Of a DNA stretch of 64,000 bases, positions 5,275 through 46,312 are shown piece after piece. The notes below the pieces were generated by a model. The model did no database searches and had not been told where the DNA came from. It saw only the letters and a list, made by a program, of their open reading frames with translations. Source of the DNA: Oikopleura dioica (Eukaryota > Animalia > Chordata); the NCBI GenBank assembly GCA_907165135.1, contig OU015569.1:10602001-10666000 (forward strand), written 5' to 3'. How positions within the stretch are numbered: position 1 is the stretch's first letter; each line of letters starts with the position of its first letter. The translations under genes were made by a program, and so were the position numbers.

Positions 5275-7484
5275 ATGGACGGAAACGATTTGTTGGCGAG
5301 ATTCAAGGTGAAACACCTCGTCTGGATTCCTGTGATCGGCTTCATTCAAATCTACTTTCTGTGGCACTATGCGAACAAGGCCGAGCACATAAGAAAGGCG
5401 AAAGATGCGTTTTTGTCGAAACATTTCGAAGATGCAGAAAAATGGAGAAGCGAGTATCTTGTGCATTTTGACTACGCCGTTGGAACGTACGAAACAGAGG
5501 CGGGAATTGAAGTGAAAGACGTCACACTTGTTTCTCAATGCTCTCCAGGAAGGTTAGACGCACTTTTTTCCATTCAATGTTAGTTTCTGTCTGCTAAAAT
5601 TTGTCTGTGTTTAACTGAGTGAAAGACAACCTGCATCACGTAGAAGGACTTATGAAGGCTTGGAAAGGGCCTATTTCGATAGCCGTCTTTGCGCCCGATC
5701 GTGACGCTGTTTCGGCGATGTTTGGCATCCAGATATTGAGAAAGTGCAACGCAGATATCAGAAGACACGTTACCTTTCATATCATGTATCCGAGTACCCA
5801 CCCGCCGCGATTTGATGAAACTGTCGAAGATTTTACTGAAGAGGAATGCATCCTAGGCCCGGGTTTTCGATATTTTCAAAATTTCTGATTGTTCTTTTTG
5901 AATTAAAAATTTAAAACCAGATAAAAGCAATGGAACAGCTAAAAGCATGGGAAGGAGCAAACTACGCTCGTGGCGAGCTGCCTTATCCCCAAAACTCGCT
6001 GCGAAACATCGCTCGGGCGAAGATCAAGACCGACCTGTTCTACCTCGTGGATATAGATACCGTGCCTAGTGGAGACTTGCGTTATCAATTCACCAAATTT
6101 GCAAAGAAAAGAGGCCTCTTTGATCAAACAAGACTCGAAGCATTTATCACACCTGCATTCGAAATAAGAAGCCATCATCGCTTGCCACAGAACAAAGACA
6201 AAGGTGATTATTGACAATCAAGTCCACTGGCAGAACTTCTGCCGGAGAAGTTTGGATCGACCCTTTCTTCTGCTCTAAACGATGGCCCATACCAAGTTTT
6301 TACCCTAGTTATTCGATTGGTCGACGACGGAGAAATGCGTCCCTTCCACTACGATACATGTCCTTATTGCCACAAACCGACGGAATTCGACCATTGGTAC
6401 GGATACCGCGGATCTGACGAGCTCGAGGACGCGTACGAAATCGAGTACTCAAATTCCTTCGAGCCCTTTTATCTCGCCAATACTCACGTCGCTCCCTTGC
6501 ACGATGAGCGATTCAAGGCTTATGGCTTCGATAGAATTAGTCAGGTAAAATCCTGATATTGATCGTCGTTTTTAATAGTTACTTTATGAAGATTTGCGAA
6601 ATGCACGTAAAAGGATTTACCTTTTATGCACTTAACAACGCCTTCATCGTTCACAAAGGATTCAAATTCAAGAAGAACTTCCACGAAACCAAAGACTACG
6701 AGAACAAGAAGAACGGCAAAATTTACGAAAAGTACTTCAAGCCAGAGCTGAAAGTTAAGTACCCGAATTCGCAGCGTGAATGTCTCGAGGAGTCAGCCAA
6801 CCGCAGAGGCCATGTCCAAGTCAACGTCGATAATCTGAAACAAATCCTCAAGAGGGGCGTAGAGTAAGTCTGCGAAAAATAGACAGTCGCATATTTTTTC
6901 TTAGGCAGCACATTCAAACTGAAAACAAGAGAGAGAAGAGGAATGCCGATAAAAGATCTGAAGAGCAAGGCTTAAAATCTGAAGAATCGGAGCAATTAGA
7001 ACAAGATATTCAATCAGACGAGATTCTAGAGGAATCACATTCACCGGAAAATCTTCCTGACGAGAGCATTTTATCTAAAGACGATGAAGTGCAAGAAACA
7101 GACAAAGATGAAGATTCCGTGTCAGAAAGTGAAGAAACCGAAGATCGAGAAGAGGAATCTATTGAAGAAGTTGGTGAATCAGACGAAGAAGCTGCACAAA
7201 TTGAGCCGTCCCACAACTTCCTTTCCGAGAACGAAGAAGCTGAGCAAGGAAATCTTCAAGAACCTTTGGAGAATGCAGAAGTTGAACCAATAGTCGAAAA
7301 AGAAGAAGACGAGAATCAAGCCGAAGTATCGGATGAAATCTCCGAAGATAGTGAACAAGAGGATGAATCCGAAGACGCACCTCAAACCGGTAAGAAAGTC
7401 AAGAAAGGCTGTCAAACTCATAAATTTTCTTCAGAGATAGAAACACGTAATGTACGTCTTCTCCACCGCGAAGAACTAGATTAG
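5275..7484 (+). CDS. B4GAT1: GT49-family glycosyltransferase (B4GAT1/LARGE-like, type II membrane) with a predicted acidic C-terminal tail
   Basis: N-terminal TM segment, then DNLHHVEGLMKAWKGPISIAVFAP, YPQNSLRNIAR, DxD motif (LVDIDTVP), FEPFYLA..PLHDERFKAYGFDRISQ and ALNNAFIVHKGF. A GTAAGT donor at 6864 and a TTAG acceptor at 6904 join in frame to the acidic ORF ending at 7484. Confidence 0.8.
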
Positions 7485-7761
7485 GAATGCCTTATCAACT
7501 AAACTATCAATCGATGCCAAAGAACACTTGCCTTTATAAATCTATTTTACTATCCTCTGACTGATAATATTTCTGTATAACGAGTAGTCTTTTTTCTGTA
7601 CCAATTTAAACCATCCTATTCGTTCATCAACACTTCCAACCTGAAATTGCAACTTGAAACCTATTTACCTTCTAAAGAAACCCACGTCTGTATTTTCTGT
7701 ATAGTTCCGAATATTGCTATTATATCTTCCGAGCTCGAGTTATCACGATAATAATCGTAGA

Positions 7762-8736
7762 ATGTTGCGAAAAGCTACTGTTCGACTTACTCGACCTATC
7801 GCTGCTCGATCTCTTACATCTGAGAATCGATGGTCTGGAGACTTTATTCATGTCTCTCACACTGACGCCAAGGTACTACCTTTTATCCCTTTCTCCTTCT
7901 TATCTATCCACTATCCAGGTCGGATTGATCGAGTTGGACCGACCAAAAGCGCTCAACGCTCTCTGCGACGGACTGATGCTCGAAGTCGCCAAGGCCCTCG
8001 ACGAATTCGACGCTGACAAGTCGATCGGCGCTGTGATCATCACCGGTCGAGGGCGAGCCTTCGCCGCTGGTGCTGACATCAAAGAAATGCTTCCTCTCAA
8101 CTATGCCCAAGTCGCTGGTGGTGATTTCTTGGCGCATTGGGGTCGCGTTTCCAAGAATACCAAGCCTGTTCTTGCCGCTGTCAATGGGTTTGCTTTTGGT
8201 GGTGGTTGTGAGCTGGCGATGATGTGCGACATCATGTAACTTCTATCAGTAGTTCTAGCCAGATTAGGATGATCTAGGTACGCTTCCGACAAGGCAGTTT
8301 TTGGTCAGCCAGAAATCAAGCTCGGCACCATTCCCGGCGCCGGCGGCACTCAGAGATTAACTCGCGCTGTTGGAAAATCCCTTGCGATGGAGATGTGCCT
8401 TTCTGGCGAGCCAATCAAGGCTGATCAGGCACTCGTCGCTGGACTCGTTTCCAAGGTCGTCCCTGGCGACCAGTTGCTTGACGAAGCTCACAAAACTGCC
8501 GCTAAAATCGCCGAAATGTCACAGGTGTACTTTGAGCGTCCCTTCTTTTGTAAACTCTGTTTTAGCTGACTACTGCCATTTGCAAAGAAGCCGTCAACGT
8601 GGCCTTCGAGTCGACTCTGGCCGAAGGTGTGCGATTCGAGAGACGCATGTTCCACGCCACTTTCGGCACTGAAGACCGCCGGGAAGGCATGTCCGCTTTT
8701 GCCGAAAAGCGAAAAGCCAACTTCAAGGATTGCTAA
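7762..8736 (+). CDS. ECHS1: Mitochondrial short-chain enoyl-CoA hydratase
   Basis: [72 protein letters not shown] and [18 protein letters not shown], with 3 short GT-AG introns. Confidence 0.95.
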
Positions 8737-8922
8737 AAGCAGTTCTCTATTTCACTGTATTCCAGGAAAAAGACTTCAAATTAGAAAATATTTACCTTTC
8801 TTTTCTCCCTGGAAAAATAATATTTATAGCTCTCTCGAGGATCTGTAATCCCACAGAGAATTCCTTCAAAAATGCCTGTTATACTCAATAAATACTTGTA
8901 GATAAGAGTTGCATTGAGAAAT

Positions 8923-10159
8923 ATGTCAAAATATGCAAATTTGCCAGGATATGATACGTCATCCAAAACGGTTTACGGGGACAATATCGATGACAATATG
9001 AGCATGCCCGAGGAGGATCGTGATTGGAAAGGTAGTCAAGCAATGAGCAACGAGTTTTCTGTATTGAAATTTTTCGATAAGCAGCAGCAGAAGGAGAAGG
9101 GGAGGAAGAAAACGAGGAGAACGTGGAAATCATTACTTGTGAAGCAGCTGAGGCGATCAAGCGCTTCCGCGAAGGTGATATTGATCAGATCGGGGATGTG
9201 ACTGGAAGACAACTGACAGGTCTTTATCTTTCTCATTTAAACAGGAAGTTTAAAACAAGCGCATTCAGAATCGGTAGAAACAGCGAGAAAGATGATGGAC
9301 AAGCTGACCGACACCGGTGCAAACACACAATCTCTTGACGTAGAAATGGTCGCTCAAGAAGCGTCGAAGCCGGATTCAAGCTACAGAATATATTCAAACG
9401 CAGAAGCGACAATCTCACAGTTGCAGCAGCGCATTTCGAGACTGGAAGAACTAGGTAACTTTTGGAGCAACTTGCGTTCTTCCGTTGACAGAAGAAGGCG
9501 TTCATGTTTTGAAAGCCCAGTTCTGAAAGTTTACAGCCTTAGCGCTATCTCTCAAAACTACCAGACTTCTGGGCTAGAAATGAGAAATCCGTCTCATATG
9601 AATGGAGAATTTATCGTCATTTTTCTAGTAAACAGTGTTCCCGCTGATCCACTGCAGCCAGGAGGAAGCCTCTCCGACATTGCCCAAACGATTTCTCAGA
9701 AGATGGCTCTTTTAGAAGATGATAAAGTCAAAGCCGCGGACGCCAGGTTAGGCTCGCTTCTTGAAAAATACAAGGAGGTGCCTGAAAGTCTTCAGAAACT
9801 TCCGGATCTTCATAAAGTAAGTGAATATTGAATCATCCTGAGTCAATTGCTTATGATCTGTTTATCTAGTGGGAGCCTGTTTTCACAGCTCTTCCAGCAA
9901 TTGTCGAACGATTGGAATCTCTCGCGCCGGTTCACCAAGTTGCTGCCCGTGTAGCCCAGAACTTCGTCAATTTAGAAAAATGTCAAGCAGCCATACAGGT
10001 TCATACAGTCACAACCGCTCTTTTGAAGCGCATTTTCAGTCTCAACTGGATCGTTCGGAAGCGACACAAAACGAACTGCACAGCGCAATGAATCAAAACC
10101 TAAAGATCGCCGCCGAAAACGCCAAAAATCTGACGGCCAGATTCGAAAAACTTCAATAA
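8923..10159 (+). CDS. DCTN2: Dynactin subunit 2 (p50/dynamitin)
   Basis: N-terminus MSKYANLPGYD...VYG, the segment VEIITCEAAEAIKRF, coiled coils, and C-terminal LPAIVERLESLAPVHQ...ENAKNLTARFEKL. Confidence 0.75.
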
Positions 10160-10593
10160 CTCCTCGTTGCACCATCCATCCTAAAAAGACAAAATTCCCA
10201 TCATACTATTACTTTCAAGAACTTAAAAATTCAAGCAACTTTAGTTTTCCTAAAACGACTTTCAATGAAACAAAAAATGTGCGCGTCCACAACCCGCTGT
10301 ACAAAGTTATTATTTACCGAAAACATCTGTAGCTCCCGGGCCGAGGTGCTTTAAAACAAATAATTTGTAATTAAAAATTTTCAAAAATGCATGTCGCACT
10401 TTCATTTTTTCTAACCATCCCGGCCCTGTGACTATTTTCGTTCATTTCTTCACGTGACCTGGCGTAAATATGTTAAAAGCAATGTTTAAGATTACTCCTG
10501 AATGCAAATCAGCAAAAAACATGATGTCAATTTGCATTCATTTCACTACTCTTTATTGCGTCTATCTATTAATTATATATATTTTTCGCTAGA

Positions 10594-12434
10594 ATGATCA
10601 GAGGATCAGTAAGAGGATGGCGTCCCTCAAGAAGTTTCTCTATCTCCACTGTTTTCTGCTCTGAAACCAAGAAAGCAGGGGTGACCATTTGGGCAAAAAA
10701 ATCATCGTCGGGCCGACCAATTGCCCGCCCAATACCAAAAATCAAGACCCGGGCCGACCAAATGCCCGACCAGTCCGATGTGCCCAGAATGCCCAATCGG
10801 GCAATTGGGCAATTTTTCGGGCATAAATTTACCCGACATTTCGGGCTTGTTAAAACTTTAATTTTTTAAATTTCTCTTAATAATTTATTACAGTTGAAGA
10901 TTGGGAAGGTTTGAAATATATTTAAAAAGCGGTTAAAAAATAATTTTGTAAAAGATCGATCAGGTTGTCAAGAATAGACAGCTAACCATTAAGGTCCACT
11001 TCACACACTCTTGCATAACCGTCTCGAAAAAAGGGGTTCAAAAATGGGGTTGGAAAAATGAGTGATAAAAAGGATTTGGAGGTCAAGGGTAGACAGCTAA
11101 CCATGAAGGTCCACTTCACACACCCTTGCAGAACCATCTCCGCAAAGAAGGGGTTGAGTTAAGGGTAGAGATAATTTCACAAAAGGATCAAGAGGTCAAA
11201 GGTAGACAGCTAACCATAGAGGTTCACTTCACACACCCTTGCAGAACCTTCTCCTTATATCTTTTTTCTTGTTTATGAGCTTAACGACCAATAAGCGGAC
11301 AGGAAAACGCCCACGTTCATGATTTTCCCCGGTGGGCATTTGCCCAACTGCCCGATGGTGTCCAACTGCCCAGAAAATGCCCAAATGCCCGACTTTTCCA
11401 ATGTTGCCCAGCCTATTTTCAGGCGTTGAGCCGACCAAATGCCCGCCCAAAAGCGTTTTTGCCCGAAAAGTGCCCGATTTGCCCAAATGCCCAATGCCCA
11501 AATGGTCACCCCTGAAGAAAGTCGACAAGACAGTCAACAAGGCGAAAATTGGAATGGACGAAAATGCGCTCTTCAAATACTTTTCTAGCGGTTGCTTCGG
11601 CCTCAAAGATTTCTTCCGACCTGTGGAAGATTGGGAAAACATTGTCAGTCTTTCTGCCAATTTTTCTGGGGCCGAGTATACTCCTGAGATCCTGAAGGGC
11701 TTCAAAAACGATCAGCTTCATGAGCTTTGGTATGTTCTTTTGAGGCATAAGAATCTTATCCGAACGGAAAAGTACGAAGCATGGAGAAAGAAGAAGGTAT
11801 TCAACCATAATTGTTCTTCAATGATAATCGTTCTCAGACCTATGAATACAAAGTAGACCCAGAAGAAATTGTCTCTCATAGTATGTTCAATATCAAAGAA
11901 GAAATAAAAAGGAGGAATCAAACTGTCGAGCGGAAGCGAAGAAGACCGCGGAGAATGGAGATGACAACTCTTTACGATACGTCTGGAATCGGCAGTGGTA
12001 GTGAAGTCGAGCTTGATGCTCATGTTCTGCCCCCAACGTAAGATTCTGGCGAATTTCTATCTTTATCTTTTTGTAGATCAGAGTCTCCAAAAGGCTATCC
12101 TGAGAATATGGACACGCATCACATTAATAACTACTATCCAATGGATGTTGAGCAGCCAGCTGCGATATCTTTCTACGACAAGAATGGCAAGAAACAAACT
12201 CTTATTCACTTTAAAAAATTTGAAATTTTAGATATGGATAAAATGTCACTTCAAGAAGACGCGGCGATGCAGGAGCACTACTTCTTCGCTAAAATTAATA
12301 AAATGTGGACACATTATAAAGGCAAGCAGTCGCAAATCCTTTCGCCCGAAGAGTATCAAAATAGACTTGAAGATGGCTATTATCCAGAAGAAGTTCCAGA
12401 CGTGCGTATTCCTCAAAGATCTCTGATCATATAA
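10594..12434 (+). CDS. MRPL47: Mitochondrial ribosomal protein L47 (uL29m); first exon interrupted by a TIR element
   Basis: LKDFFRPVEDW and GAEYTPEILKGFKNDQLHELWYVLLRHKNLIRTE match the uL29m core. Removing the element plus one TSD copy restores the frame (SETKKVDKTV). Later introns join in frame to the stop at 12434. Confidence 0.8.
10676..11514. mobile_element. 839-bp non-autonomous TIR element (20-bp TIR, 7-bp TSD) within the MRPL47 coding exon
   Basis: CAGGGGTGACCATTTGGGCA (10676-10695) is the exact reverse complement of TGCCCAAATGGTCACCCCTG (11495-11514). AAGAAAG flanks both sides, and subterminal regions are TGCCC-rich. Confidence 0.92.
10975..11253 (+). repeat. ~114-bp tandem repeat, 2.5 copies, inside the MRPL47 element
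   Basis: TAGACAGCTAACCAT..GGT(C/T)CACTTCACACAC.CTTGCA recurs at 10975, 11090 and 11203. Confidence 0.9.
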
Positions 12435-12676: not shown

Positions 12677-15600
12677 ATGGAAAAGTATGAAGTCATATCG
12701 AAAATAGGCTCTGGTTCGTATGGGGAAGTGTCGCTCATTCAGGACAAGAAAACGTCGAAGAAATATGTGGTGAAGAAAGTGAGCTTGCTGGGCACGTGGA
12801 AAGAGAGAAAAGCGGCGATGCTGGAGGTGAAGTTGTTACAGACACTCAAGCATCCGAACATCGTCTCGTACCACGACTCGGTTCAGAGTCAAGACGGCCA
12901 CTTGCAAATTGTCATGGCCTACTGCGAAGGCGGCGATCTCTGCAGATATCTCAAAAAGCGAAAAGAGCCACTGGACGAGCAGCAACTTGTCGAATGGCTC
13001 GTGCAGACCTGCATGGCGCTACAGTACTTGCACAGCAAAAACATTCTTCACAGGCTCAGGTTCGAAAACGCCACTACTCCGATACTCCTTGTTGTCACCA
13101 AACTACCAAAACAACCGCAAATTACCAAAGAAAAAGAAACTGAAAGAGTGAAAATCATCAATTGGAAGGTCACTCTTTCTTAGTTTTTTAGGTGATAAGT
13201 TTGGTTCTCAATCGATGATCAAAAACCAAATTAGTTTATTGTGAAAAAATAGAAAAGAACGAACAGACAAATTCAAAAAGATCTAAAATAGTGAAATTTA
13301 GAACAGGAAAAAAACAAAACGGGAATGAAAAAATCGTGGCTACAGAAAAATACATATGAAATTAAATCTAAGACTACAGTAAGAAAAAATACGAGTGAAA
13401 AACATAAGCTAAAAAGTGACAGAGTGAGTAAATACAGAGAGATTAAATACAAAAAAAATATAAAATTTTCAATAAGGTAAACGAGAAGGAAAAAATCTGA
13501 AGAGCGCTTAGAAAGCGTGTTGAGTTTCCTCTTCAGTGTAGACAAGCTCCTCGTGGACAACTTTGGTGATGGCCAAGTCAGCTTCGCAGTCGCCGGCGAC
13601 TAGAATTGAATTTTAGATGGAGAAGTTTTGAGACTGAGAGTGGCTTACCGTTTTCCTTGTCCTCTTCGTTGTCTTCAGTTCGAGAGCGCTTGACGTTCTC
13701 CTCTGGGGCCTCGCTCTTTCGCTTTCGTCGGAGCTTGGTGGGGTCACTAAACAAAATGCTTTAGAATTTTTGAAGTCTAAGAGGAGATCTTACCAGACAG
13801 AGTATTTCGGCTTGTACTCGGTGACTTGAGCGCGAGCGGTCTTCATCTCTTGCCATTTCTTCTGTCGCTCGTTGACGTTTTGCTGCCATTTGGCGGGAAC
13901 AGCTGCGCCATCGAATTTTGGAACTTGGTCGACCTGGAGAATTTCGATAAATTTAAGGCCCACTATTTACACTCAGGTCGGTCCATGTTTTTTACCAAGA
14001 AATATCAAGTGAACCATCAACCGTGTGTTTATTTACAACAAAGAACCCTTTACTAACCTGCTTGTCCGTCGCGAAATCATAAAAGAAGGCGACAGGCTTC
14101 TCGATCGTCATGGTATTGGTAGTTGAGGAGTTCGTCTTGTCTGTACTGTCGAAAAGTGAATCTGAGCCCTTTTCTGAAAAATGGGCTCAGCTCGACAGAT
14201 CCTCATAAACATTCTAGAGAAAATTTTTCAACTCGAAAACAACTTTTGCCGGAGATCGCGCGGTTACCAGTTTTCGGCGGATAATTCGCATTTTAAGGCT
14301 TTTTGAACCTGCAAAAGAGATCTAAAAACTCAAAATATATTTCTGACATCTAGTGAAGTTATAAAACTTGGAGATTTGGGGATCGCAAGAGAATTAGGAG
14401 CGGTTTTTACACAAAAAAATGGCGATTTTGAGAGTTTCTCTCTCGAACGCGAAATTCTAGAAAAATTTGTTTGTTTTTCGGGATCAACGAAAATTTTCTC
14501 GTTTTTTCTCGCCTTTTTACCCCTTTTTCGAGTGTAAAAACCGAGTTTAGACTCTGCTACTGATCTTGCAACAACTGTAATTGGTACTCCCTACTACATG
14601 TCGCCGGAGCTGTTCAGTAGCAGGCCTTACGGGAAGGAATCCGACGTCTGGGCCCTTGGTTGTTGCACTTTTGAGATGATGACGCGCAGGCATGCATTCA
14701 ATGCGCGCGATTTGGACTCTTTAGCCATGAAAGTCTTGCACGGAAAAGCTCCTAAAATGCCACACACTTATTCAAAGCGACTAACAGACCTGGTTCTTCG
14801 AATGCTATCTTTTGAATCTGAACATAGGCCAACTGTATCGGAAATACTCCAGCAACGTTTCGTTAGGTAGAGTCCTTATTTCCAAGGAATTATCATAAAC
14901 TGATTTTCTGCTGAAATGTTCATCTTGGGAAAATAATTGTAATCATTTTTTATAAAACAAAGCTGATGTTTAGTGAAAAAGCTTACTTCAAAGCATGTCC
15001 GCAAAAGCTTTTTTTTCCGCATTTCGCATGGAAAATATTTTCCACTAGTCCATATCATAAGTAAAATGTGGCACAGACCCAGTCTAAATACGAAAAAATG
15101 ATGCTGGACCATGGAAAATATAACTCGATATATTTTATAATATGAACTCTTGTAGGGACAGGATCAAAATTTTCCTGGCGCGACAACGTCCTCACTCTGG
15201 AAAGTCTTCACGGAAATCTTCCTCTCGACCTTCATCTGGTAAAAGTCCAGTCTCTCAAGGATTGGATGTCTATATGTTTACACCAAGTAGATAGTTGCAA
15301 ACTCCTGAAACCTCCTTGGTTCCCGGACTTTTAGCATCATTTTCGTCATCTTTCATAGCTCCCGCACTAAGCCAACTTCACGAAAACGCTCCCCCTGCTC
15401 CTAAGACCGAGGAAAAGCCAGCAGAAACGGAATTTAACACGATGGAACCACAAATAGGAACAGTAGTCTTCCAGAACGAATCCGAACCGGTTAGACAAGC
15501 AAAACCGCCATCAGAGAAGGCGAAAAACGCCCAAATGAATCAGTTTATTTCTGATGTGGCACTCAACTACGCTATGCAAAATCCAAACTTGGCGGAGAAC

Positions 15601-17593: not shown

Positions 17594-17626
17594 AAGGAGA
17601 GTTGCTAAATAATTGTTGATTTAAGA

Positions 17627-24812: not shown

Positions 24813-26654
24813 TTAGTTCATGTGAGGCACGATCCAGTCCAAGAAAGCGGAGACTTTAGTCCACACGCCGGGTGAATTTGGCTCAGCGCATCCGAAGCCC
24901 CAGCTTGTGACTCCGACCACAACGGGTTGGTTATCTTTGTCAGCGCAAATCAATGGCCCTCCGGAGTCGCCTTGGCATCCGTCCTTACCTCCTTGTGGCC
25001 AGCCAGCGCAGATGTGCTCGTCGCTGCGGACATAGCCAGAGTTTCGAGTTTTCGCACACTCGGCGTCCGAGTAAATCTTTTTGACGCGCTCGATACAAGT
25101 AAACAGAAATAAACACTGCCAAACAATGATTTACCTTATTTATCGCCTAAACAAAAAATTCTGATATCACTTTTTTAACTAGATTTTTGTTACTAGTAAT
25201 TGTTTCGATTTTGATACTCGGCTTGTCTATCAGATAGAACACGTTTCCTGTAAGTCAACTTCTTGTAACTCCTGTGGGAGGGATTTGAATCCCGCTGGAT
25301 GGTTCACGAGTCCCCAACCGGCAGACCAGCATCGAGTCCCATGAGCAGGCATCGAACCCGCCTCTGGAAGACACGCGGGAGCACCATTATGAAGCTTGAG
25401 GTTAACAGCGCCGTTTCGATTAAATTTCAAAATGCAGATGTCATTCACAAGCCCAACTTGTTTATATTCTGGATGGACGATCACTTCGTCGGCTATAAAA
25501 TTAATTACAATTATAACTTTTGCGTGGCGCTTTTCTTACCAGAAATTTTCTTTTCTCCTAAATCGTATTTCCACCTGTGGTGATCGCCAATTGTGATGGA
25601 AATAAACTCTGGAGTATCCATTCGATCCTTGCAGCAATGAGCCGCCGTGATCACTGTCTTGTCGTCGATGATTGTTCCGCCACAGTTGTAGCCAAAGAAA
25701 TTGATGTTGACAATCCACGGCCAAGAGTTTTTGATCGCAGTCACTCCTCCGATTATTCGTTCATCGTTTAGCGGGCTCCATGGTTGCTCCTGCTTCTGCT
25801 GCTGCTTACAAACAAGATTTGGTGGAATTCGGAACACTGGTGGCTCCTCCGCAACTTCCTTATTATCTTCTTCTTTTTGTGGTGGCGTTTGGCAGTACCA
25901 GTTTCCATAGTACGTCGACAAACTCGGTTCATCGACGATTTTGGAACCAATTCGCCAATGGCACTTGCCGCCTTTGTCCATTCGATCTTTCGGCCAGCTG
26001 ATGCACTTGCAGACTGCTTGGATTTTCGTCTTGTTGATCGGCTTGATTGCTGTCATTTTCTTGGGATAACCAGGGCATGTGATTTTCATGATGCGCTTGA
26101 TGCTACTTCCCCATTTGCGATATAACTCCTCAGCGTGTACATCTGAGGCGTCTGTGTTGAAGTCGTCGCAAGTTTTGCACTGAGTTTTGTTTTTATGAGC
26201 TCTATTTGTTCCATAAACTTTGTGTCACTAAGTTTACAAGTGCTCTTGTTATTTTTCTAGAGGCGCAAACAGTAACTATGGTCTAATTATAAAAAGGTGT
26301 TCTGCATGACATCATGTATATGATAATAAGACAGGGTAATTACTTTTAAAAACATTCCTCAGCAAGTTCATTCATGAACTGGTAGTCCCACGGTTGTGGC
26401 CCCCACCATATACGTCTGCACCTGGCGAACTCGTGACCGCCGTAAAAGTGGTAACCATCATCGCAGATGACCTGACAACGGTCACCACGACATCTGACCT
26501 CTCCGTTGCTGACTTCGAAAGTACTCTGGCCGGCAGCGCCTATTTTCGGCAAGTTGTCCTCTTTGAAGCCCTGCGATACGAAATTTCCATCTTCGAAGCA
26601 TCTCTGATATTCGCCACTCGCCGCGGTGGACGCCACCAAGAACGAAATCTTCAT
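24813..26654 (-). CDS. Secreted trypsin-family (S1A) serine protease with Cys-rich N-terminal modules
   Basis: Signal peptide [13 protein letters not shown], activation site R-IIGG, WPWIV, CGGTII, TAAHC, NDICILK, GDSGGPL and [17 protein letters not shown]. The catalytic triad is intact. Confidence 0.9.
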
Positions 26655-27560: not shown

Positions 27561-29647
27561 TCAGATGATGTACGCTCCTTCTTGGTCCTTGATTTGGTTT
27601 TCTTTGAAGAAGTAGATGAGGTTCGAAAGTCGCCACTTTTGGTGTATCGCTGGGAAGTACTGCGTTCCCCCACGACCGATGGTTTGGAAGTTGAGGTGAA
27701 GCATCAGACACATACTAGCAGCACCTCCACTGCAAAGAATGGTGCAAAGCATTTCGAAAGCAGTCCAAGGCCTTAAAAAATATTAACACATTAAAAAGAG
27801 GGGCTCGAATTGAAAGGCTATTACTAATAGCTAGGGGAAACCACTAATAATTGAGCTTTTTTTTGGGCTTAGTAGAGTAGGCACTTACGTTTCTCTATCG
27901 ACGATGCACAGTGCATAAATATATCCGAGCTGGTTGAGCACCATGGTTCCGATAAAGATTACAAACAGCCTGTGATTTCCACGGGCAATAGTTCTTTGAA
28001 GAAAAAGGCAATGATGGTCAAAGTCAAGATAGGCGGCGTTGGTGAGTTTGCAGTACTTGGCCTTTGGCGGGAGAATAATTCTCAGCTGGTGACAATAATT
28101 CGAGCTGTGGGCTAAAAATTGTCACGTAATTGACAATTGAGGGATTTGTGGTTAGCCTACCGTCTTGGTCGATAATGCGCTGCAACGCGGCATTGGGCTT
28201 CTGAGAAGTAGTTGATTGCGGAAGTTTGAAGGGATGGGCGGTTAGGACCTCTTTGGTAGCTTTGGCCATGCAAACATGGAGAAAAATACAGAAGATTAGG
28301 CTGCTTTTGAAGTGGCCATCATCGCGCAAAATGGGACGCAGCAGCAAGTTGATGTAGAATGAAAGGAAACAGGCGAGAACTGTAGAGAGGAAAAATCCTT
28401 TGAAGAAGGGATTGGGAAGGCCGCTGGGGTGTTTGATCCGGTGTCCGTTCTTTTTACCCAGAAAGACTAGCATTCCAATTGCGAACAAAAGGAAAGGAAG
28501 AACAGCGAAAATACTTTTGATTTCGTAGTATTCCATTAAAAGCGAAACGATAAGAAGACCAACAACCAGTTTCATCGGCTGCTGCATATTCTGCGCTTTA
28601 TATCGGCTCGATACTTTAGATCTACTTCAGCCGGTCAAAGCGAAGAAAATTCTGAAGCCAATCCTTGAATTTTTGAGCCAGCGAATTTTGCTTTCTTATT
28701 CCAGGTGACGTCAAGAAACTGGTCGCTAAATGGTGACGAGGGGGTAGATCCCGGCTTCATCGGATTTCCACGGCCTCGATCTTTTTCTGACGCCTTATTG
28801 TCCGCCAATTGAAGGGGCAGAAATCCACCTCTGTCTCTTCTTTGGAGCAAATCCCAGCCTTAGAAATTCAGTTATAATAATTGATAAAATTGTCTATTTG
28901 TAGTTACCTGCTGTTTCGCAGATTTTCCATGTTATTTGCGTGTTTAAACTTTGGCAAGAATAATGGACGGCGCTTTGAAGTTCCGAGTCTTCTTCTCGAG
29001 CGCTTCGGGGAAAATGATCCAGGATAACTTCTGCCGTCTCCATTTGATTCTTGTGCAGACTCTCTTGCAGCGGCGTTCGGCCATATTTGTCCTTTGCCGT
29101 TGCGTTGAAAAGGTCCATTTCTATCAAATAATGAACCATGCCCACGAAGCCTTGTCGCACCGCGGAATGGCTGATTGAACCGTTCCCGTTGTCGACGGCT
29201 TTTACGTTTGCGCCTAAAAACTCAAGTTATAATTTCCAAAAAGCCAATTCCATTTCATCACCAGATTCAATGAGCAAATCTACAATAGGCAAGCTTCCGG
29301 CAAGAACGGCGCAATGAAGAGGCGTCTCGCCATAGTCTGTTCTGCTATTGACATCTGCCCCTGAAGAGAGTAGTTTCATCGCTAGTTTCATGTCCGACTT
29401 TCTGGAGGCGACATGCAGCGGTCGTTGACTGAAAAAGAGAATATGAATTCTGAAAAAATGATTTTGCTTACCCTGCGTATCCAGGTGCGTTTATTTCCCC
29501 ATCGAAGGTTGGATTTTCGATAAAGAAGTAAATCTTCTCCTGGTTATTCTGCCTGAGTGCATGGTCGAGACACTCTGGCTCGCTCAAATCTACGGGCGGC
29601 GGGCCGGCGTACTCGGGTATGTAGCCCTGCTGCTTTGGATAGCTCAT
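27561..29647 (-). CDS. Ankyrin-repeat DHHC palmitoyltransferase (ZDHHC13/17-like architecture)
   Basis: Ankyrin repeats (RPLHVAS, GETPLHCAV, GRTPLQES), several TM helices and DFDHHCLFLQRTIARGNHRLF at ~27975-28020. Confidence 0.8.
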
Positions 29648-29877: not shown

Positions 29878-31777
29878 CTAGCTCGAGTACGAGTTGATAT
29901 CGTTGATTCTTGGACGCGTCATAATCTTGAAGTGAAGCTCAGTTTCGCTGGAAAATGAAAAACCATCCCTACCTTATTGATGCTTTCAATAATCGCTCCG
30001 GCTGGGGCCTTTTTGAGGTCTTTTTCGGTGAATAAAATACACGAGTTGTTGTTTGGTTTCTTTGCAACGAGTCCAAATACTTTGCCGCTCTGGTGCACTC
30101 TGCTGTGAGGATCAAAGTCGCAAAAGCTCACCGTCTCGGCGGGGAAGTGCTTGCGGAAGAACTTAAGCCGCTGCGAGTCAGTCACCGTCACGCCTTCCGA
30201 TGTAATCTTAAGATGTACTGGACATTTGACGTTTTCCCGCAACGAGAGATACTCCGCCATACATCGCTCCATGGCAGCCCGCCCTGTCAGCATTTCCGTA
30301 TCTGTTAACAATATTGAGTAAAATGATATTCTTCGCAAGGATTTCTTGCTATTAAATATTCAGTACCGGTTTCGTGGAGGAAAAAGGTGCAGAAAACGTC
30401 GGCAGGCGGCCTCGTTCCACCATCAACGACGATTTTTCCAGACGTCTGTGATTCGCTTCTGTCTGTAAGATCCAAAACAGGAATATTTAGTTTGACAGGC
30501 AGCGCCAGTTGCATGTGGCTGTGTTGATGGGGAAGGGTGCTCTTGTGGCACTGTCTCTCTTGTGGCACTTTCTCTCCTGTGGCACTTGCGCCCGCTGTGG
30601 TATACCACTGGAGAGACAGTGCCACAAGAGAGACAGTGCCACAAGAGAGACATTTTCAACTATCAGATTCTCGAAATGATAATTTTAGGGAGTCCACCGA
30701 CCCGTCTCCATGTGCGCGCCTCGCTGTTTTCCATTTGATAACATTTTCGATTCACATAAATTTTTGGATGGACTAAACTTTCAATAGACGATTGAGTCAT
30801 GTTACTATGTAACAGTTACATAAGTTCTGTATGATACAGACTGTATCCTTGATATCAAGAATCCAAATTTTCGGAAAAACTCACCGTAAGTGCGAGATGT
30901 GATTAGTTGACGAAATGACAATGAAAGGTCAAGGAAAGTTTTGTCCACGTAGAAAAATAAATTTTAATCAGAAAAAGTTATATCGGCAAAAAAAGAAACT
31001 AAAAAACTGCGAGCCACGCGCGTGGAGCTGGGTTGGCGGATTCCCTAGGAAGATTATCATTTTGAAAATCTGATAGAGAACGCTTTTGAAAATGTCTCCC
31101 TTGTGGCACTGTCTCTCTTGTGGCACTGTCTCTCCTGTGGTATACCACAACAGGCGCAAGTGCCACAGGAGAGACAGTGCCACAGGAGGCAAATATGACG
31201 AAAGTGCCACAAGAGCACCCTCTCCGTGTTGATGAATAAGAGCAGCCAAAGATGGAAAAAATGGCTCCCTTCTAGAAAATACGTAAGCATAGAGTCTCCC
31301 CATTTGAGAGTCATTAAAAATACAATCCGTCATGGATCCATGGAATTCTTACCTATCATCGCCCGATATTCTGACTCCTTTCTCCTTCACAGACTCAATG
31401 AGGAAGTGACGCACAAGCTCTGACTCCGGATCTTGATCTGGGCGAAGATTGTCGAACACAGATTGCGGAACCTAACCGTTCTTTTAAGCTAATTTTGAAT
31501 CGGCAATTATTACCTGATGTCTATCCACCCTGACGACGAGTCCAAAATTGCCGCTGTAAGTTTTCGAGTCTCTGACCAAAAAGTCGCCGGCTTTTCTATC
31601 ACTTCCTTTTAGCAGTTTAATCGCTTCATCACGTGACATTGTCGGTTTATACCAAAAGCTCTCTGGAGTGCGGTAAGAGGAGGAAGAAGCTTCAACAGTT
31701 TGTCCACTCGTGCTGGGCATCGTCAACGAGAAATTATCGCGCGAGAAACTGGAGCTGAAAATGCTCGCTGAAATCAA
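29878..31777 (-). CDS. TNS: Tensin-family SH2 + PTB protein (C-terminal part; upstream exons probably extend toward ~33.6 kb)
   Basis: SH2: FWYKPTMSRDEAIKLL..GDFLVRDSKTYSGNFGL, ELVRHFLIE..KGVR, PFFPSLAALIHQH/SHMQLALPVKLNIP. PTB: VHLKITSEGVTVTDSQRLKFFRKHFP..VSFCDFDP, VFGLVAKK. Confidence 0.88.
30530..31225. mobile_element. 696-bp Mutator-like (MULE) non-autonomous element: ~130-bp TIRs, 9-bp TSD, inside the tensin SH2 exon
   Basis: TSD GTGTTGATG at 30521-30529 and 31226-31234. Termini GGGAAGGGTGCTCTTGTGGCACT / AGTGCCACAAGAGCACCCTCTCC. Subterminal GTGCCACAAGAGAGACA repeats surround a GTGGTATACCAC palindrome. Confidence 0.9.
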
Positions 31778-39700: not shown

Positions 39701-42700
39701 AAAAGAATTTACCTCGTTCGAGAAGCTTGACATAAGGCATTCTGGTGAAATTCTTGGGCTTTGTGGAAAGAAGGATATCAGTCAGATGCGACTCAATATT
39801 CAAGTTCGTTTCCTCCTCGTTGCTAAAGTCGACGACGATATCAGCTTTGCTCGACGTTCCAAAGTATACTTCTTCGTCGAAAACAAGACCCTCTTGAGGC
39901 CCAGAGTTTGCAAGCTCGAGATAGATGAATTTTGAACGGCTAAATATAATATGAGATGAAAACGAAAATAGTGAAAATCGTACGTTCCAAGAATGCCAGA
40001 AGTAGGGAATTTCTTTTCCAAATAGTTGTAGACATTTTTGTCATCCGTATAAAACGAGAAACTTGCGACAAAATTGTTCAACCGGGGATTGATGTTCTCG
40101 ACCAAATGCTCGAGGTAAAACTTTGAGACATCCATATCAGGGTAAACGATCGCGTACAAATGAGACTGTCTAACTTCCTTCTTGCAATTCCTCCGAGCTC
40201 GATCAATCGTCATTTTCATAAACTCCTCGTTTTGTTGAGAAATTTCTTTTAAGATGTTTCGTTTGCCTATTCTGGGCGTTGCAGCACGAGCCTTACGTTT
40301 ACTAAAGCAACACTTGTTCGAAAAAATATATAAAAATCATTACCTAATCGCAATTCTGGTCCGACGAAGCCACCAAAGGGCCGCTTGCTTCGAAATTCGA
40401 TCGCGTCTTCTTTGCCGGACAGCAGCAACTTTTTCTCTATGCACTCTCCTGACTGTCGCGATTTCTTCAAGAAGCATTAACTTGACATCTTCGGCGACAA
40501 CTTCTTCCATAATGTTTTGTCTTTCCATAAGCGCCGTATTTTCGCAAATGGCTCTATTCCTAGTGGCGATTGCTTCGTCTACATTTTCCTCAACAAACGA
40601 TGAGATGAAATTCCCGATCGCATGGTCGACCATGTTCGAAATGCTTCGCTGCAGAAATTGCTCTTTCCACTCTTCCTTGAGTTGGCGAATACGCTCCTTC
40701 TCTTCCGCGATTTGGTTCTTCATCTCTTCTTCTCGCAAGCGCTCCTGGAGAAGCATATTTTTGTAAATACGCGTTACTTCCCAACCGATGTGATCGTCGA
40801 TTATCAAATTCATAGTGTCGTTGATTTGTTTAGCGACGACTTTTTCTTCGATCCGCACTCCGGAAGCGATTTCGCGCAATTGCCCGTCGACGACATCGTT
40901 CGTAATCTCTTCTTCCATCTCCCTAGCAGCGATATTCTCAGGTAGGTTTTCCATCATGTCGCTTCTATTTTGCGCGTCCTCTTCAAGCTTGGCTCGGACG
41001 TTTTCAATGATGTCATTTGCGCTCTCTATCAGCCGATCGGAGCGGGGAGGAAGGAGGAAGAGGGTTTGTAATTCCTCGACGACCATGGCTTCAGGTGCAA
41101 ATCGATTCCCCAGATCAGCTGGCCTGGGGTCCTGTTTGCTGAGAGATCTTCCATGATGTACTTCGATTTCCACTTGGGAAGAGGGACTTCCGGCTCTGCA
41201 ACAAAACTCTTTGCCATTTCAACGATTGAGACTAGGCCATCGTCGTTCGGAAAGACATTGTGCGCCGCCATGTATGTCTCAAAATTAGGATCACTTGCCT
41301 TGAAAAAGAGTGCTTTCTGGAAACACTCCATAGGCAGAACGTTGTTGGCGTAGCCTCGTCGCAAGATTTGCATCGCGTGGTAACGCACGTTTCCCATGTA
41401 TCGATGCAAGATCGAGGCTTCCAGCGCCGTGCACTTGCTAAACTCGTTCCAAAATATGGCATAGTGCCTGAGCATATAAGCGGAAACAATGCGACGGGCG
41501 CGTTTGATCAGTGGATGCGTCTTGAAGCGTATGGGCACACGAGAAAGGTATTTCATCACAGCACCCGAGTCGTTCAGATTCAAATAAATCATGTACGCGC
41601 GAAACTCTGGCTCCGCAGCTGAGTACTGGCCTCGGACGGAGATGTCCTGGTAGACGTGCTCAATTGAAGTGAGCGTCTTTTCCAAGTTTTCATCGTTGAT
41701 CCGCTGGTCCCAAAAGTCTTCAAGAACCATGCTATGCGAGCACCAGATGTGATATCGCGCCACGGTTTCAAGCACCTGCGCCGTTTTCAAACAAGACATG
41801 TGCTGCTGCGTAATGTCTTTTCGAATAGCGCGTGTGCGCTTCCACATGAAATCGTACCAAACATCAGCCCCAATTTCCTCAATGACATCTTCTGTGCAAA
41901 CTTCGGAGCAAAAATACCAGCAGCAATCGAGCAACGTGCTCGCTGGGCGCAACTCGTTCGGAAGGGACTCTTCGGTATCTGCAGCGGATCGCTGGTAAAC
42001 CTTGATGCACTTTTCGATAGCGATTTGTCCGTGCTCGTTCATTTCCAACACGGAGATATCCTGCTGAGTCCATCGTCGATAGATTTCTTTTTCCGGACAG
42101 AGATCGGCGCAGATTCCAACCTGCGCGCCTTCTCGCAACTCCTGTATCAACACATCACGGACGGTTTTGTCACGCGTTTCCAGAATTTTGAAGCGCTTCT
42201 CGGCTAGGTCAATATCAATCGCGTCTGGGTTCTTCGCCAGTGACGCGGCTTGGGAGCGTTTACTTCCGTCAGCTTTAGATTTACTGGATTTCAAGAACGA
42301 GGCAAAGCCAGACGGTTCGGGCGAAGCGCGGTTCTTGGTTTTCTTTTTACGAGAGTTGATGATTATTTCCGACTAGTTTCCATGAGGAATGGATTAAGCA
42401 GTGGCCCGCTGGAGCACAGACGCTTTATAACTCATGAAATGTCAACTTATTCCGATGGAAAATTGCCCATCATGTCTCAAGCTTTGACGCAAGAACTCTT
42501 TCCTGGCCAAATGAAGTCACCGGAGAATCCAACTGTATTTCGGAGTTCAACGGTTTCTTTCCAAAGATATTTCCTCTATTTCTTAACGAGCTCAATAAGC
42601 AGTCGATGAAAATTATTTCACTAAATTTTTCATGAAATAAATATATTTGAATAAGTTTTGGGCCCGTTCCTTGGATCCGATTCTGCTGTTTCAGGTGCAT

Positions 42701-44327
42701 CAAACGGTGAGTTACTTCGTTCATTTCTGTCGATAGTTCTTGTTATCTTTACTGGTTGAAGCTCCTCCTCCGATGATTTTTCCATCTGTCGCTTCTTTTG
42801 CTCATTCAGTTGCTTGGCATATACAGCGTTCGTGGAGCTTCCAAATGTGTCAAAAGCAGCGTCGGAGGATCCTGTCATCCCAAACGGGTCGGACTCGGGG
42901 ACAGAAAAGACATTCTCGCTAGATATAGATTCCAACGATTTTTCCTCTTTTCCTCCCTTGTCTCGCCCAAAGCGAACTTTTAGCGACGGAAACTGGTTCT
43001 CGATCCTAGCTCGCGCGTCTGCCGCATCTTTGGTGTTACGAAAGAACAGCTTCAACGCTTTCTTGAGTGGAACTGGAGCGACTTTTTCCAGGCCAGGTGG
43101 CTTTAGCACATTTTTAGCAAAATCGCGCATGATGTCTGAAATTTTGAAACTTGGATGAATTGAGTGTTATTATCAGTCAACTACCTTTGTTGACGCACAC
43201 TTTGGGATCGAGGTCTTTCACTAGAAGAATAGAAGAAGTATGAACTGGATCAAACTTCTCGGCAGGTTGTTGTGCCGCAGCTTTAGTTCTTTCAGCGCCG
43301 GAGAAGCTACCAAATACCGGCTTCTTTGTCGCTTCTTTGCGGAAGGATTTATATAATCAAAAATTTGAAAGAACGGTATAATAGAACGTATGATGCATGT
43401 AATATGTAATCATAGATAGCACGGTAAAACATTTCTAATTTATCAAATTAATGCTAATTTCTAATATCCTGTCGAAATATATTATAAATAGAAGAATTTT
43501 TTCTAAGGGAAGTTAGAATCTATTACATACATCGTATGTAACCTTAGATAACAAAAGTATGAAGAAAATTCTCCTCCATCCCTTGTTTCCCTCCGCCAAA
43601 CGAGCTGCGCAACTGGAAAGATGTTGCTTTGGGAACATCCGTTCTTGGTTGGCCAGCGGAAAATGACGTCTTCGCGGCGAAAGGATTGCTCTGGGCTGGG
43701 GCGGTAGACTTGAGGCTGAAGGTCGAGGACGAAGAGGATGGCGCAGAAAATGCTGCTTCTGCAGCTTTTGTTGTTTGCGGATTAGTACTGAAGATGTTTT
43801 TCCCGTTTCCGGCAGTGGAGAATTTCAGCGGCGTCTTTGAAGGATCCTCAAGGAAGGATGAAGTATCAGTGGCGATGGTATCATTTGCAGGCGCGTTACT
43901 TCCAAATATAGATGTTGGGCGGAAAGTGAAATCGGACGAAGGTGCTTCCTTTAGATTCATTATTGTTAATCTCAAGATCTTTTGTCTAGTCTTTCTATAC
44001 CTTTTTAACCTCCTTCGCTCCCGCTGTACCGAAGCTACCGCTTGGCTTGAATGAAAAGCCCCCAGATGGGCCACCAGTAGCACTGGAACCGAAGGTGGAA
44101 GAAGCTTTCGCAGAAAACGATGAGCTTGAAGTTGATGATGATGGATTGCCTACACTGGCAAATGGATTGCTAACGAGCCCGGAAGCGAAAGAAGCTCGCT
44201 TGGGAGGCACATCTTCTTCGTTTCCCGAGTCTTCTTTCGATATCCGCTTGCCAAACGTGGCACTAGAATTTTGAAAGGTGCTTCCCGAAGAAGCCGCCTT
44301 AGCAAAAGGATTCGAAGAGCCAAACAT
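36725..44327 (-). CDS. MCM3AP: GANP / MCM3AP (Sac3-family TREX-2 scaffold) with a predicted long acidic SQ/TQ-rich C-terminal extension
   Basis: FG-like N-terminus (FGSSNPF, GGFSFKP), RRM-like region, and Sac3 domain (GICADLCPEKEIYRR, YQRSAAD, RTRAIRKDITQQ, EPEFRAYMIYLNL), then CID-like coil and GYSHV..VLAWYN. Core 38640-44327 is firm; linkage to 36725 relies on predicted introns. Confidence 0.85.
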
Positions 44328-44390
44328 TTACTCACGCATTCTGAAAAAAGGTTATTGAAGACTCAGCATCATTAAATTAATTAAATTAGG

Positions 44391-46312
44391 CTATTTCTGA
44401 GCTTCAGAGTTGGGTTTTTCAGGATCCTCTTTAGGAATAGCGTTCTTATCTTCGATATTTTCCTCTTGTTTCTCGGTTTCTTGAGACTCAGAGACTGATT
44501 CCACCTTCTCGCCTTCCTTTTGGATTGATCCGACTTCTGCATGTTCCTTCGACTCTTTTTCTTGTTTTTCCTCGTTGTTTTCTGCAACTTTCGGAATTGT
44601 CGAGATCGCTCCAGTTTTGCGCTTGTGATACTCTTGCCAGTTGTACTTTTGCCGTGGGAGCCAATCTTTGAAAATGCCAATGTAGCAGTTTTTCTTCAAG
44701 ACTTCGACAAAAATAACATCATCAGTTTTCTTCCAGTCGATGGTCATGTCTGGTCGAGCTTCTAAAGCACACTTTAGCATGATTTAGAGCAGGTTTTTTT
44801 TAGGTCAGCATTTTATAACTCTTTTTTGGCGTGACGTATCTTCAAAATTTAAGTTGGAGGATGTTCCTTGGCCGAAAACAAAAATTTCCACCAGACCGGA
44901 TTTTTGAACCGACTGGTTATTTCGCGGTAAATTGCGGTTAAAAATTTTAGACCCTCGGGGCAAGTTGTTGGGCACGCAGTTTTCGTGCCCAAAAGAAAGA
45001 GTGAAAAATTTTTAGTCGAACAAAATATATATCAACTAAGAAATATAAGAAAAATGATGTTAGAAACTCCCATAAATGGTGCGTATAAACAGCTGATTTG
45101 AGCATATTTGGGTTCATTTCCGGTGATATTTTAACCGGTTGCTAGCTCTCATCAGATCACGGTTTTAGTATTGATAAACTCAGAATTTCTCGCGCTTTCT
45201 TTTGGGCACGAAAAGTGCGTGCCCAACATCATGCCCTGAGGGCGTAAAAATTTATAACCGCGATTTACCGGGAAATAACCAGTCGGTTCAAAAATCCGGT
45301 CTGGTGGAAATTTTTGTTTTCGGCCAAGGAACATCCTCCAATTTAAATTTTGAAGATACGTCAAGCCAAAAAAAAGTTATAAAAATGCTGACCTAAAAAA
45401 AACCTGCTCTTAGTTCATTAACAATCTTACCCTTGACGACTCCAATCACCATCGTTTTGACTGCCTGGCTATCGAGGCTTGAATGAAATCTCGCTCTCGT
45501 CATCACATGATAATCTTTCACATCAGCGGGCATTTCTTTCTCGAGAACGTCCTTGATCGTCTCGGTCATGATTTCTTTTGTGGCAGTGCAAACTCGTTGA
45601 ATCGGTAGAAGACGCTCCAGATGTGAGGGAACACGAAAATTATCCGGCACCTTCTCTGCCAGAATCGTCTCCCACATCGTATTCAAGATGCTTTTGGATT
45701 CTAGCTTTTCATGGCGAATATCCATGAACTAATTCATGGTCGAAAACAATCCAAAAGATCTGGTTTTGTAACCAAAAATATAATGATTTCGACCCTTCCC
45801 AAAGATTGGCTGACTCCCGTTTCGTAAATATGAAAAACCCGATCGTTTTTATCCTCCGAATTAGCTTGAGACTCGGCAAGTAGTTGCTTCTCAATATCAA
45901 CGTGTTCCTCTTCAGTTTCATTATCATCAACTGGCGTACATTCTACCACTCGGTCTCCATTCTGGTCGACGAGTTGAGGATAAACCTGATTGGTGAAGTA
46001 TTTGGCGATGGAAAATGCCTCTCGGTGGCATTGTTTCAGACATTTTCGGCGGTAGGACATGAGAAAACCATGGGTAGTGTCTTTTCATTCGGTTTTCAAT
46101 AAAAAAATACGAAAAAAAAACTGATGAATGGTGCAAATTGACTGAATATCCGCGAAATGCATCGAGATCTAGATTGACTGGTGATTTAAAACCAATATGC
46201 CTTTTGGGTCAACAGAATTGCCAGAATACTTGCATCTTTTAATGTCTTGCGGATCTGTGCCCCCATAAACTTGCTTGTAGTTCATCTTTCTTTTTCCATT
46301 ATTCTTTCCCAT
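44391..46312 (-). CDS. THUMPD1: THUMP domain-containing protein 1
   Basis: HGFLMSY..C..EAF, LERLLPIQRVC, GVVK|EARPDMTIDWKKTDDVIFVEVLKKNCYIGIFKD...KYNWQE and an acidic tail. Intron 1 is GC-AG (46081-46200). Confidence 0.8.
44787..45409. mobile_element. 623-bp PIF/Harbinger (Tourist-like) MITE, ~230-bp TIRs, TTA TSD, inside a THUMPD1 intron
   Basis: TTA|GAGCAGGTTTTTTTTAGGTCAGC ... GCTGACCTAAAAAAAACCTGCTC|TTA, with long inverted arms. A TWA TSD is typical of PIF/Harbinger. Confidence 0.88.

Follow-up and report, generated by a model that had tools for sequence, protein, structure and literature searches.

The 64,000-nucleotide stretch of Oikopleura dioica DNA analysed here (contig OU015569.1, positions 10,602,001 to 10,666,000), hereafter the window, carries genes in which several introns lack the GT donor and have ends complementary to each other. 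Most introns of this larvacean are lineage-specific, and the question of how they arose and are recognised dates back to the publication of the genome. In O. dioica, some 11-12% of introns are non-GT (PMC8008620). The seven stem-bearing introns lie in a B4GAT1-like gene (Glyco_transf_49), a NEK kinase gene (NEK4, two introns), a trypsin-like protease gene (two introns), GANP (SAC3_GANP) and a THUMPD1-like gene. Pfam supports the first four labels, as well as that of MRPL47, a gene with a transposon in one exon; the name THUMPD1, without support from Pfam or PDB searches, is the label of an earlier reader. Six of the seven introns had been listed in that reader's original prediction, which described their ends as inverted-repeat stems of near-fixed geometry, taken to be remains of eroded transposons and/or structures that position weak donors. 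On re-reading the stretch at these six introns, all quoted letters and coordinates proved exact.

All stem-bearing boundaries have the form AG^G(A/C/G)...AG, where ^ marks the splice junction. A helix starts some 3 nt downstream of the 5′ splice site and is separated from the terminal AG by an A-rich spacer of 5-9 nt, with neither a GT donor nor a pyrimidine tract. The tail before AG has an A fraction of 0.49 vs 0.25 (p=0.004), as in CAAAAG, CAAAAAG, CAAAG and GAAAAG, and pyrimidines are scarcer there than in GT-AG controls. The stem-bearing introns measure 77-1264 nt, whereas the GT-AG median is 47 nt. A contrasting case is the GC-AG intron of 45 nt at the head of the contrast rows in the table, whose splicing is confirmed by its joint in a same-lineage metatranscriptome contig. 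It forms 1 bp in the register of the other introns and is the only one with a strong GC donor context (AG^GCAAGT-like, here GCAAGA), the NEK4 and THUMPD1 donors being GCTCAG and GCATAT. Because this verified intron has no stem, the class is limited to long, A-tailed GV-AG introns (V being A, C or G) and does not comprise every non-GT intron. U12-type donors ((A/G)TATCCTT, with branch site TCCTTAAC) were absent among the examined introns. In larvaceans, U12 components are lacking (bioRxiv 10.1101/2025.08.15.670264). Mirtrons, which are whole-intron hairpins of about 60-70 nt whose ends are the splice sites, were not found among the seven, which leave 3 and 5-9 nt unpaired and extend over 77-1264 nt.

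Table. Stem-bearing introns, contrasting introns and the intact transposon of the window (positions within the window; arms given 5′ arm / 3′ arm).
Feature	Position	Strand	Length	Arms or helix	3′ tail	Remarks
B4GAT1-like (Glyco_transf_49) GA-AG intron	5549..5625	+	77 nt	5552-5562 / 5606-5616; 11 bp, 3 G·U	9 nt, A/G-rich	
NEK kinase (NEK4) GC-AG intron	13054..14317	+	1264 nt	13057-13068 / 14300-14311 (CAGGTTCGAAAA / TTTTTGAACCTG); 12 bp, 1 G·U	CAAAAG	nested antisense gene inside
NEK kinase (NEK4) GA-AG intron	14398..14550	+	153 nt	14401-14412 / 14532-14543; perfect 12 bp	AGTTTAG	TTAG direct repeat at both boundaries
Trypsin-like protease GA-AG intron 1	26180..26357	-	178 nt	26354-26347 / 26195-26188 (TGTTTTTA / TAAAAACA)	AAACTCAG	
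Trypsin-like protease GA-AG intron 3	25077..25247	-	171 nt	25244-25237 / 25091-25084, from +4; 8 bp, 2 G·U	CAAAAAG	missing from the original list
GANP (SAC3_GANP) proposed GG-AG intron	43335..43581	-	247 nt	from +4; 6 bp, 2 G·U	CAAAG	junction putative
THUMPD1-like GC-AG intron	46081..46200	-	120 nt	46195-46188 / 46096-46089, plus outer CAT/ATG beyond a bulge		AAAAG direct repeat at both boundaries
GC-AG intron (contrast)	12187..12231	+	45 nt	no terminal helix		conventional donor ATG^GCAAGA
GT-AG intron of the NEK gene (control)	14868..15155	+	288 nt	only 4 bp in the +4 register		
Transposon in MRPL47 exon	10676..11514	+	839 bp	perfect 20-bp terminal inverted repeat CAGGGGTGACCATTTGGGCA, beginning CAGGGG		intact

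The junctions were set by homology, through Pfam and LARGE1 alignments, kinase motifs, intron-less relatives and transcript-derived orthologues. The relatives are open reading frame fragments on Tara, ENA, JGI and Logan contigs of related larvaceans (taxa not established), found by exon searches of a large protein collection. Homology fixes five of the six non-GT junctions originally listed, GANP being the exception. In B4GAT1, Pfam PF13896 (from profile position 11) and LARGE1 both align with the downstream exon from DNLHH onwards; since the alignment begins there, the upstream exon ends at ...CSP. The in-frame GT-AG model chosen by a gene finder for this intron (5579-5619) would add 11 residues, for which the alignment leaves no room. 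The NEK4 GC-AG intron splits the HRDLK motif (H-R^D-L-K), and the coding sequence is uninterrupted in contigs L001 and L005. At the NEK4 GA-AG intron it is uninterrupted in L001 and L007, and four mRNA reads from another lineage join ...GCGAGAGAA (...AGAGAA^) to TTAGACTCT. For protease intron 1, a metatranscriptome contig of a related lineage (L017) reads ...MDIAE^CKTCDEF, by which the GT-AG alternative is ruled out. Protease intron 3 was found by aligning the homologue P0093 to the window (...EVDLQ^IYS...), and the THUMPD1-like junction agrees with the transcript-derived protein P0108, of equal length across it. At GANP, an in-frame GT-AG alternative (43552-43324) competes with the proposed GG-AG intron. 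The claim that the reading frame requires a non-GT donor was thus too strong for B4GAT1, the protease and GANP when the window is read by itself; homology decides in its favour for the first two.

The geometry was fixed in advance from the original prediction as the longest helix starting exactly at +4 and leaving 5-9 nt unpaired at the 3′ end. Helices in this register reach 11 bp in B4GAT1, 12 bp in both NEK4 introns, 8 bp in protease intron 1, 6 bp in GANP and 4 bp in THUMPD1. The re-measured 3′ overhangs of the first five, all starting at +4, are 9, 6, 7, 8 and 5 nt (NEK4 GC-AG before NEK4 GA-AG), as had been claimed for five of the six. The looser register noted for THUMPD1 is also borne out, the helix beginning at +6 with the outer CAT/ATG bulged. 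No helix of at least 6 bp starts at +1, +2 or +3 in the seven introns tabulated. Protease intron 3, which stood outside the set from which the hypothesis was formed, forms 8 bp from +4 and leaves 7 nt; random window segments attain 8 bp in the fixed register with P=0.003, and the intron amounts to a successful prediction at P about 0.003.

Comparison with GT-AG introns within the window went the way the original prediction would have it: 56 controls never exceed 6 bp in the register, and the non-GT introns differ from them by the Mann-Whitney test (p=1e-4) and, for helices of at least 6 bp, by Fisher's test (p=2.5e-6). Most controls come from a home-made gene finder, which over-predicted on both strands, swapped true non-GT introns for false GT-AG ones and was used only for short GT-AG controls. 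Among long GT-AG introns, the two that were verified (124 and 288 nt) show no such helix; they are too few to part donor type from length. Comparison with shuffled sequences, based on the duplex energy between the first 22 nt and the last 28 nt of each intron, divided the listed introns. Values are low for NEK4 GC-AG (p<=0.0005), NEK4 GA-AG (0.001) and the protease (0.02), borderline for B4GAT1 (0.055) and unremarkable for THUMPD1 (0.10) and GANP (0.30). The distribution of these p values is flat for 51 predicted and six verified GT-AG introns.

The relatives inform on the gain and the retention of these introns. Four contigs whose exons are 70-75% identical to those of the window (L001, L002, L003 and L005) have neither NEK4 intron, and L007 is without the 153-nt one. 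At the empty site of the 153-nt intron all five carry a single TTAG, whereas TTAG stands on both sides of the 12-bp inverted repeat in the filled site of the window. L004 (exons about 88% identical) and L006 (about 80%) keep this intron as 161 and 342 nt. Its donors across the three lineages are GA, GA and GC, and in minimum-free-energy folds the same terminal stem closes it in all three. Identity is 77-82% in its arms and 50-59% in the aligned columns of the interior (Fisher p=0.014 and 0.035); MAFFT alignment also reveals conserved blocks in the interior. In L004, one pair of the stem has gone from A-U to U-A by a compensatory double change, one has become G·U and one is broken. L004 and L006 also conserve the 3′ arm of the NEK4 GC-AG intron.

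In the THUMPD1-like gene, the donor is GG in L009 and L014 and GA in L016. The orthologous arms read GGCTAG/CTAGCC and TTGGTT/AGCCAA, as against TTGGTTTT/AAAACCGA in the window, and in L009, L014 and L016 they pair better than shuffles (p=0.02, 0.0005 and 0.006). In the B4GAT1 orthologue (L018) the core GTTAAA/TTTAAC is kept in an intron 26 nt longer. Position +2 differs (A, C or G) between orthologues of one intron, and the pairing of the helix is kept across the diverged lineages, as judged from these alignments. Where the protease exon of the window is continuous, L017 retains a 102-nt GG-AG intron (L017:474-575, CAG^GGAGCGCTT...ACTAACGCAG^), with a 6-bp helix from +4 whose 3′ arm lies about 20 nt from the intron end.

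The orientation of the imperfect pairs bears on the level at which the stems are kept. Helix length allowing G·U on the sense strand was compared with the antisense equivalent, which allows A·C. Sense helices are longer in five of seven window introns and never shorter (sign test p=0.03); over all 14 introns they are longer in 10 and shorter in 2 (p=0.02). Such a G·U bias is a prediction of selection on the transcript, and not of transposase-binding repeats or neutral decay. Taken with the conserved or re-invented arms and the varying +2 position, it points to selection on the stems at the RNA level. The role for pre-mRNA structure in the original prediction is in this regard supported indirectly, by arms more conserved than the interior, by THUMPD1 arms replaced yet complementary, and by the sense-strand G·U pairs. 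Lineages with 12-20% divergence between their exons have perfect 12-bp stems in common; perfection is accordingly a sign that a stem is maintained rather than young.

As to origin, the inverted repeats have 12-bp arms in both NEK4 introns and arms of 8-11 bp in B4GAT1, the two protease introns and THUMPD1; that of GANP is weak. The transposon origin claimed originally is supported, as far as sequences can tell, for the two NEK4 introns, with their lineage-specific presence, TTAG repeat and 12-bp terminal inverted repeats (TIRs). It is plausible for the THUMPD1 intron, with its bulged 11-bp TIR between direct repeats of AAAAG. The description of the introns as eroded members of a transposon-to-intron continuum is not supported in that form, as the perfect stems are old and maintained and the young MRPL47 element differs in geometry. 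Two simple accounts of the overhangs were tried and dropped: the offsets do not sum to a fixed duplication length (e.g. 8 bp, hAT-like), the sums being 8-12, and the three unpaired nucleotides are not a 3-bp duplication, since the 3 nt after the 3′ arm differ. The only hint of a family of elements comes from L007, in which a neighbouring intron has ends like those of the GC-AG intron of the window. This 117-nt GA-AG intron (L007:19-135) follows DLKTQ, 16 nt downstream of the GC-AG site, and its ends GATTGGGTTCGAAAA.../...AAAACCCTTGTAG (GGTTCGAAAA... / ...AACCC) suggest either the same element family inserting twice or an intron that has moved.

Live TIR elements are present in exons of the same window, in MRPL47 and tensin. 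The MRPL47 element has a 7-bp target duplication, AAGAAAG (10669-10675 and 11515-11521), and breaks an otherwise continuous reading frame. It is a real transposon; the assertion that it has the same geometry as the introns fails, since with the GC donor proposed for it the helix would start at +2 and leave 3 nt. No GV-AG cut restores the exact original, the proposed cut would add one Lys, and no RNA shows the element spliced out. A second, transcribed copy of this element is found in a plankton sample, in a contig that matches 11334-11514 and diverges exactly at the last element base. The tensin element (30521-31234, minus strand) has a 9-bp duplication CATCAACAC and a Mutator-like TIR starting GGAGAGGGTGCTCTTGTGGCAC; it is preceded by AC, not AG, and falls outside the AG^G rule.

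The explanation towards which we lean, and which we hold to be slightly more probably right than wrong, is that the introns were born from transposons and have held on to the stem because it pairs weak splice sites. They would be lineage-specific spliceosomal introns of O. dioica that arose when short TIR DNA transposons inserted into coding exons directly behind an exonic AG, as is clearest for the two NEK4 introns; for the class generally, we infer the same origin. A permissive U2-type larvacean spliceosome would cut the insertions as AG^G(A/C/G)N...AG, and the former transposon ends would afterwards be kept by selection on the RNA. The helix may keep the two weak splice sites, 5′ and 3′, close to each other and set the position of the cut, and may stand in for the U1 and U2AF contacts early in spliceosome assembly.

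A stronger version, in which the helix is a required cis-element defining both splice sites of O. dioica GV-AG introns and thus a metazoan RNA-structure splice code, is possible, though less likely than not. If true, the helix would act as a ruler, 3 nt off the donor and 5-9 nt off the acceptor, and would replace the U1/5′ splice site and U2AF/pyrimidine-tract contacts. TIR transposons landing after an exonic AG would then become introns at once, which would explain the massive intron turnover of Oikopleura and give a mechanistic link to the nonconventional introns of Euglena.

Several observations weigh against transposon-born, stem-paired introns. The target-site duplication extends beyond AG clearly in only two introns, the other five sharing the obligatory AG alone. 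BLAST of the introns and both transposons against the window and the fetched loci found no further copy of any of them, and with no second copy of an old intron, family membership is unproven. RNA of the same lineage covers none of the seven claimed junctions, which rest on homology; the same-lineage metatranscriptome covers the nested gene inside the NEK4 GC-AG intron and the MRPL47 3′ exons, and three bulk RNA runs come from another lineage (about 20 reads each, a few dozen partly matching). The non-GT introns number only 7-8, the GT-AG controls are mostly predicted and short, and donor type is confounded with length. Near-fixed geometry, a fair description within the window, is looser in orthologues, where the helix starts anywhere from +1 to +6, leaves 4-8 nt and can sequester +1 in L004. 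Both NEK4 introns lie beside or around the promoter region of the nested gene, a possible unrelated constraint. Scanned for without annotation, the pattern of AG^GNN, at least 9 bp of helix and AG turned up at 11 sites, where chance would give about 14, and geometry alone does not find introns. Finally, the tie between stem and splicing comes from comparing sequences, not from experiment.

If the complementary ends were neutral relics of transposon TIRs, marking origin, not yet eroded and without a role in splicing, the inverted repeats with TTAG or AAAAG direct repeats, the lineage-specific presence, the intact TIR element in a nearby exon and the weaker stems of some introns, which resemble decay, would all be expected. 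This is nevertheless unlikely, given perfect 12-bp stems across 12-20% exon divergence in introns with interiors only 50-59% identical, THUMPD1 arms that changed letters and stayed complementary, imperfections that are sense-strand G·U rather than A·C, and a fresh MRPL47 element that yields a start at +2 and not the fixed +4. The stem could alternatively serve intron length, with non-GT donors merely travelling with long inserted introns. In long yeast introns, "zipper" stems between the 5′ splice site and the branchpoint (e.g. RP51B) shorten the effective distance and raise splicing efficiency. A zipper for introns beyond about 47 nt would account for stems confined to introns of 77-1264 nt, the sole stem-less non-GT intron being one of 45 nt. 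We regard it as rather improbable, however, as the two verified long GT-AG introns have no comparable helix and a fixed +4 start would be unnecessary. The yeast zippers themselves pair canonical GT donors to the branch region, have no fixed register and are not transposon-derived.

Stems maintained for a role outside splicing (for example the processing of a small or circular RNA from the intron, or the regulatory DNA of neighbouring genes) would fit the hairpin size of the B4GAT1 intron (77 nt) and a 15-16-nt motif (ATTCTAGA..AAAATTT) that both NEK4 introns conserve on the upstream side of the nested gene. Unpaired ends of 3 and 5-9 nt and lengths to 1264 nt are unlike mirtrons, though, and the geometry recurs in unrelated genes without nested genes, which makes this reading very unlikely. 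Chance complementarity in A/T-rich intron ends, picked by eye, is hardly credible. It is true that GANP and THUMPD1 are individually non-significant, that the annotation-free scan showed no excess and that the listed introns were chosen by the earlier reader. Against this stand two helices at p<=0.001, the contrast of the set with 56 controls, the unlisted protease intron 3 that fits the geometry, and the helices kept by orthologues. Chance is refuted for the set and stands for GANP alone.

Transposon-born introns with paired ends have counterparts in other organisms. The introners of Fritillaria borealis (Henriet et al. 2019, as described in PMC11282704 and bioRxiv 10.1101/2025.08.15.670264) likewise belong to a larvacean without a U12 spliceosome, occupy species-specific positions and have TIRs and target-site duplications, the latter clear beyond AG for two introns in O. 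dioica. There the U2 spliceosome is permissive, the duplicated target supplies the 3′ splice site, and the non-canonical splice sites are the TIRs of non-autonomous transposons. Fritillaria differs in that its splice sites coincide with the transposon ends (AG-AC, AG-AT, after exonic TAC) and over 90% of introns are affected. In O. dioica the boundaries are GV-AG, the helix lies 3 nt inside the donor, the introns are a minority class and the repeat outlives the divergence of the interior.

In euglenid nonconventional introns, positions +4 to +6 (often CAG) pair with -8 to -6 (CTG) and bring the ends together (PMC3935182, PMC11282704). Their geometry is nearly the same, and they also have no pyrimidine tract, carry junction repeats like target-site duplications and vary in length. 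The NEK4 GC-AG intron has CAG at +4 to +6 and CTG at -9 to -7, as in euglenids. Euglenid borders, however, are variable and not G...AG, and the introns are excised after conventional splicing as circles, perhaps non-spliceosomally, whereas the O. dioica cases are always AG^G...AG, as expected of a U2 spliceosome. The near-identity suggests either that the same physical constraint acts in both or that similar transposons gave rise to them. The introners of Amoebophrya bear inverted repeats of 8-20 nt and direct repeats of 3-5 nt across their boundaries (PMC7789003). As in O. dioica, the inverted repeats of Amoebophrya and Micromonas introners join the ends, and they are enriched in non-canonical introns; direct repeats are present, as they clearly are in two of the O. 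dioica introns. Unlike in O. dioica, where neither the window nor the fetched loci contain another copy of the old introns, these introners form recognisable multi-copy families.

No description of such stems in O. dioica was found in the searchable full-text literature, which did not include Henriet 2019 and Denoeud 2010. Such a helix, conserved and in a set register at the intron ends, would be a concrete, testable cis-element through which to study how a U2-only spliceosome performs non-canonical splicing, in an animal amenable to culture and injection, and the transposon-to-intron route of Fritillaria and protists would extend to the main larvacean model. The rule of AG^GNN, helix, A-rich 5-9 nt and AG could also improve gene models misled by GT-AG alternatives, as here in B4GAT1 and the protease.

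Some further features of the window touch the same genes. Within the NEK4 GC-AG intron lies a nested antisense gene of four exons (13195-14138, minus strand) whose product has 127 aa (MTIEKPVAFFYDF...). A plankton metatranscriptome gives it good coverage. The gene has three GT-AG introns and occupies the same place in L004; it was not found on L001-type contigs. The motif ATTCTAGA(G)AAAATTT, 15-16 nt long, stands in both NEK4 TIR introns (14211-14226 and about 14433-14450) and is invariant in L004 and L006; lying upstream of the 5′ end of the nested gene, it may be a promoter element of that gene. A candidate third GA-AG intron of the NEK gene, of 99 nt (15260-15358, plus strand), can alternatively be read as a TG-AG intron. 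L004 shares its first 15 nt letter for letter (GATTGGATGTCTATA), and its ends can pair over 5 bp (GGATG/CATCT) with 7 nt left over. Lastly, a predicted 40-nt GT-AG segment (28086-28125, minus strand), a candidate intron only, has a perfect terminal palindrome, GTGACAAT / ATTGTCAC, that starts at +1.

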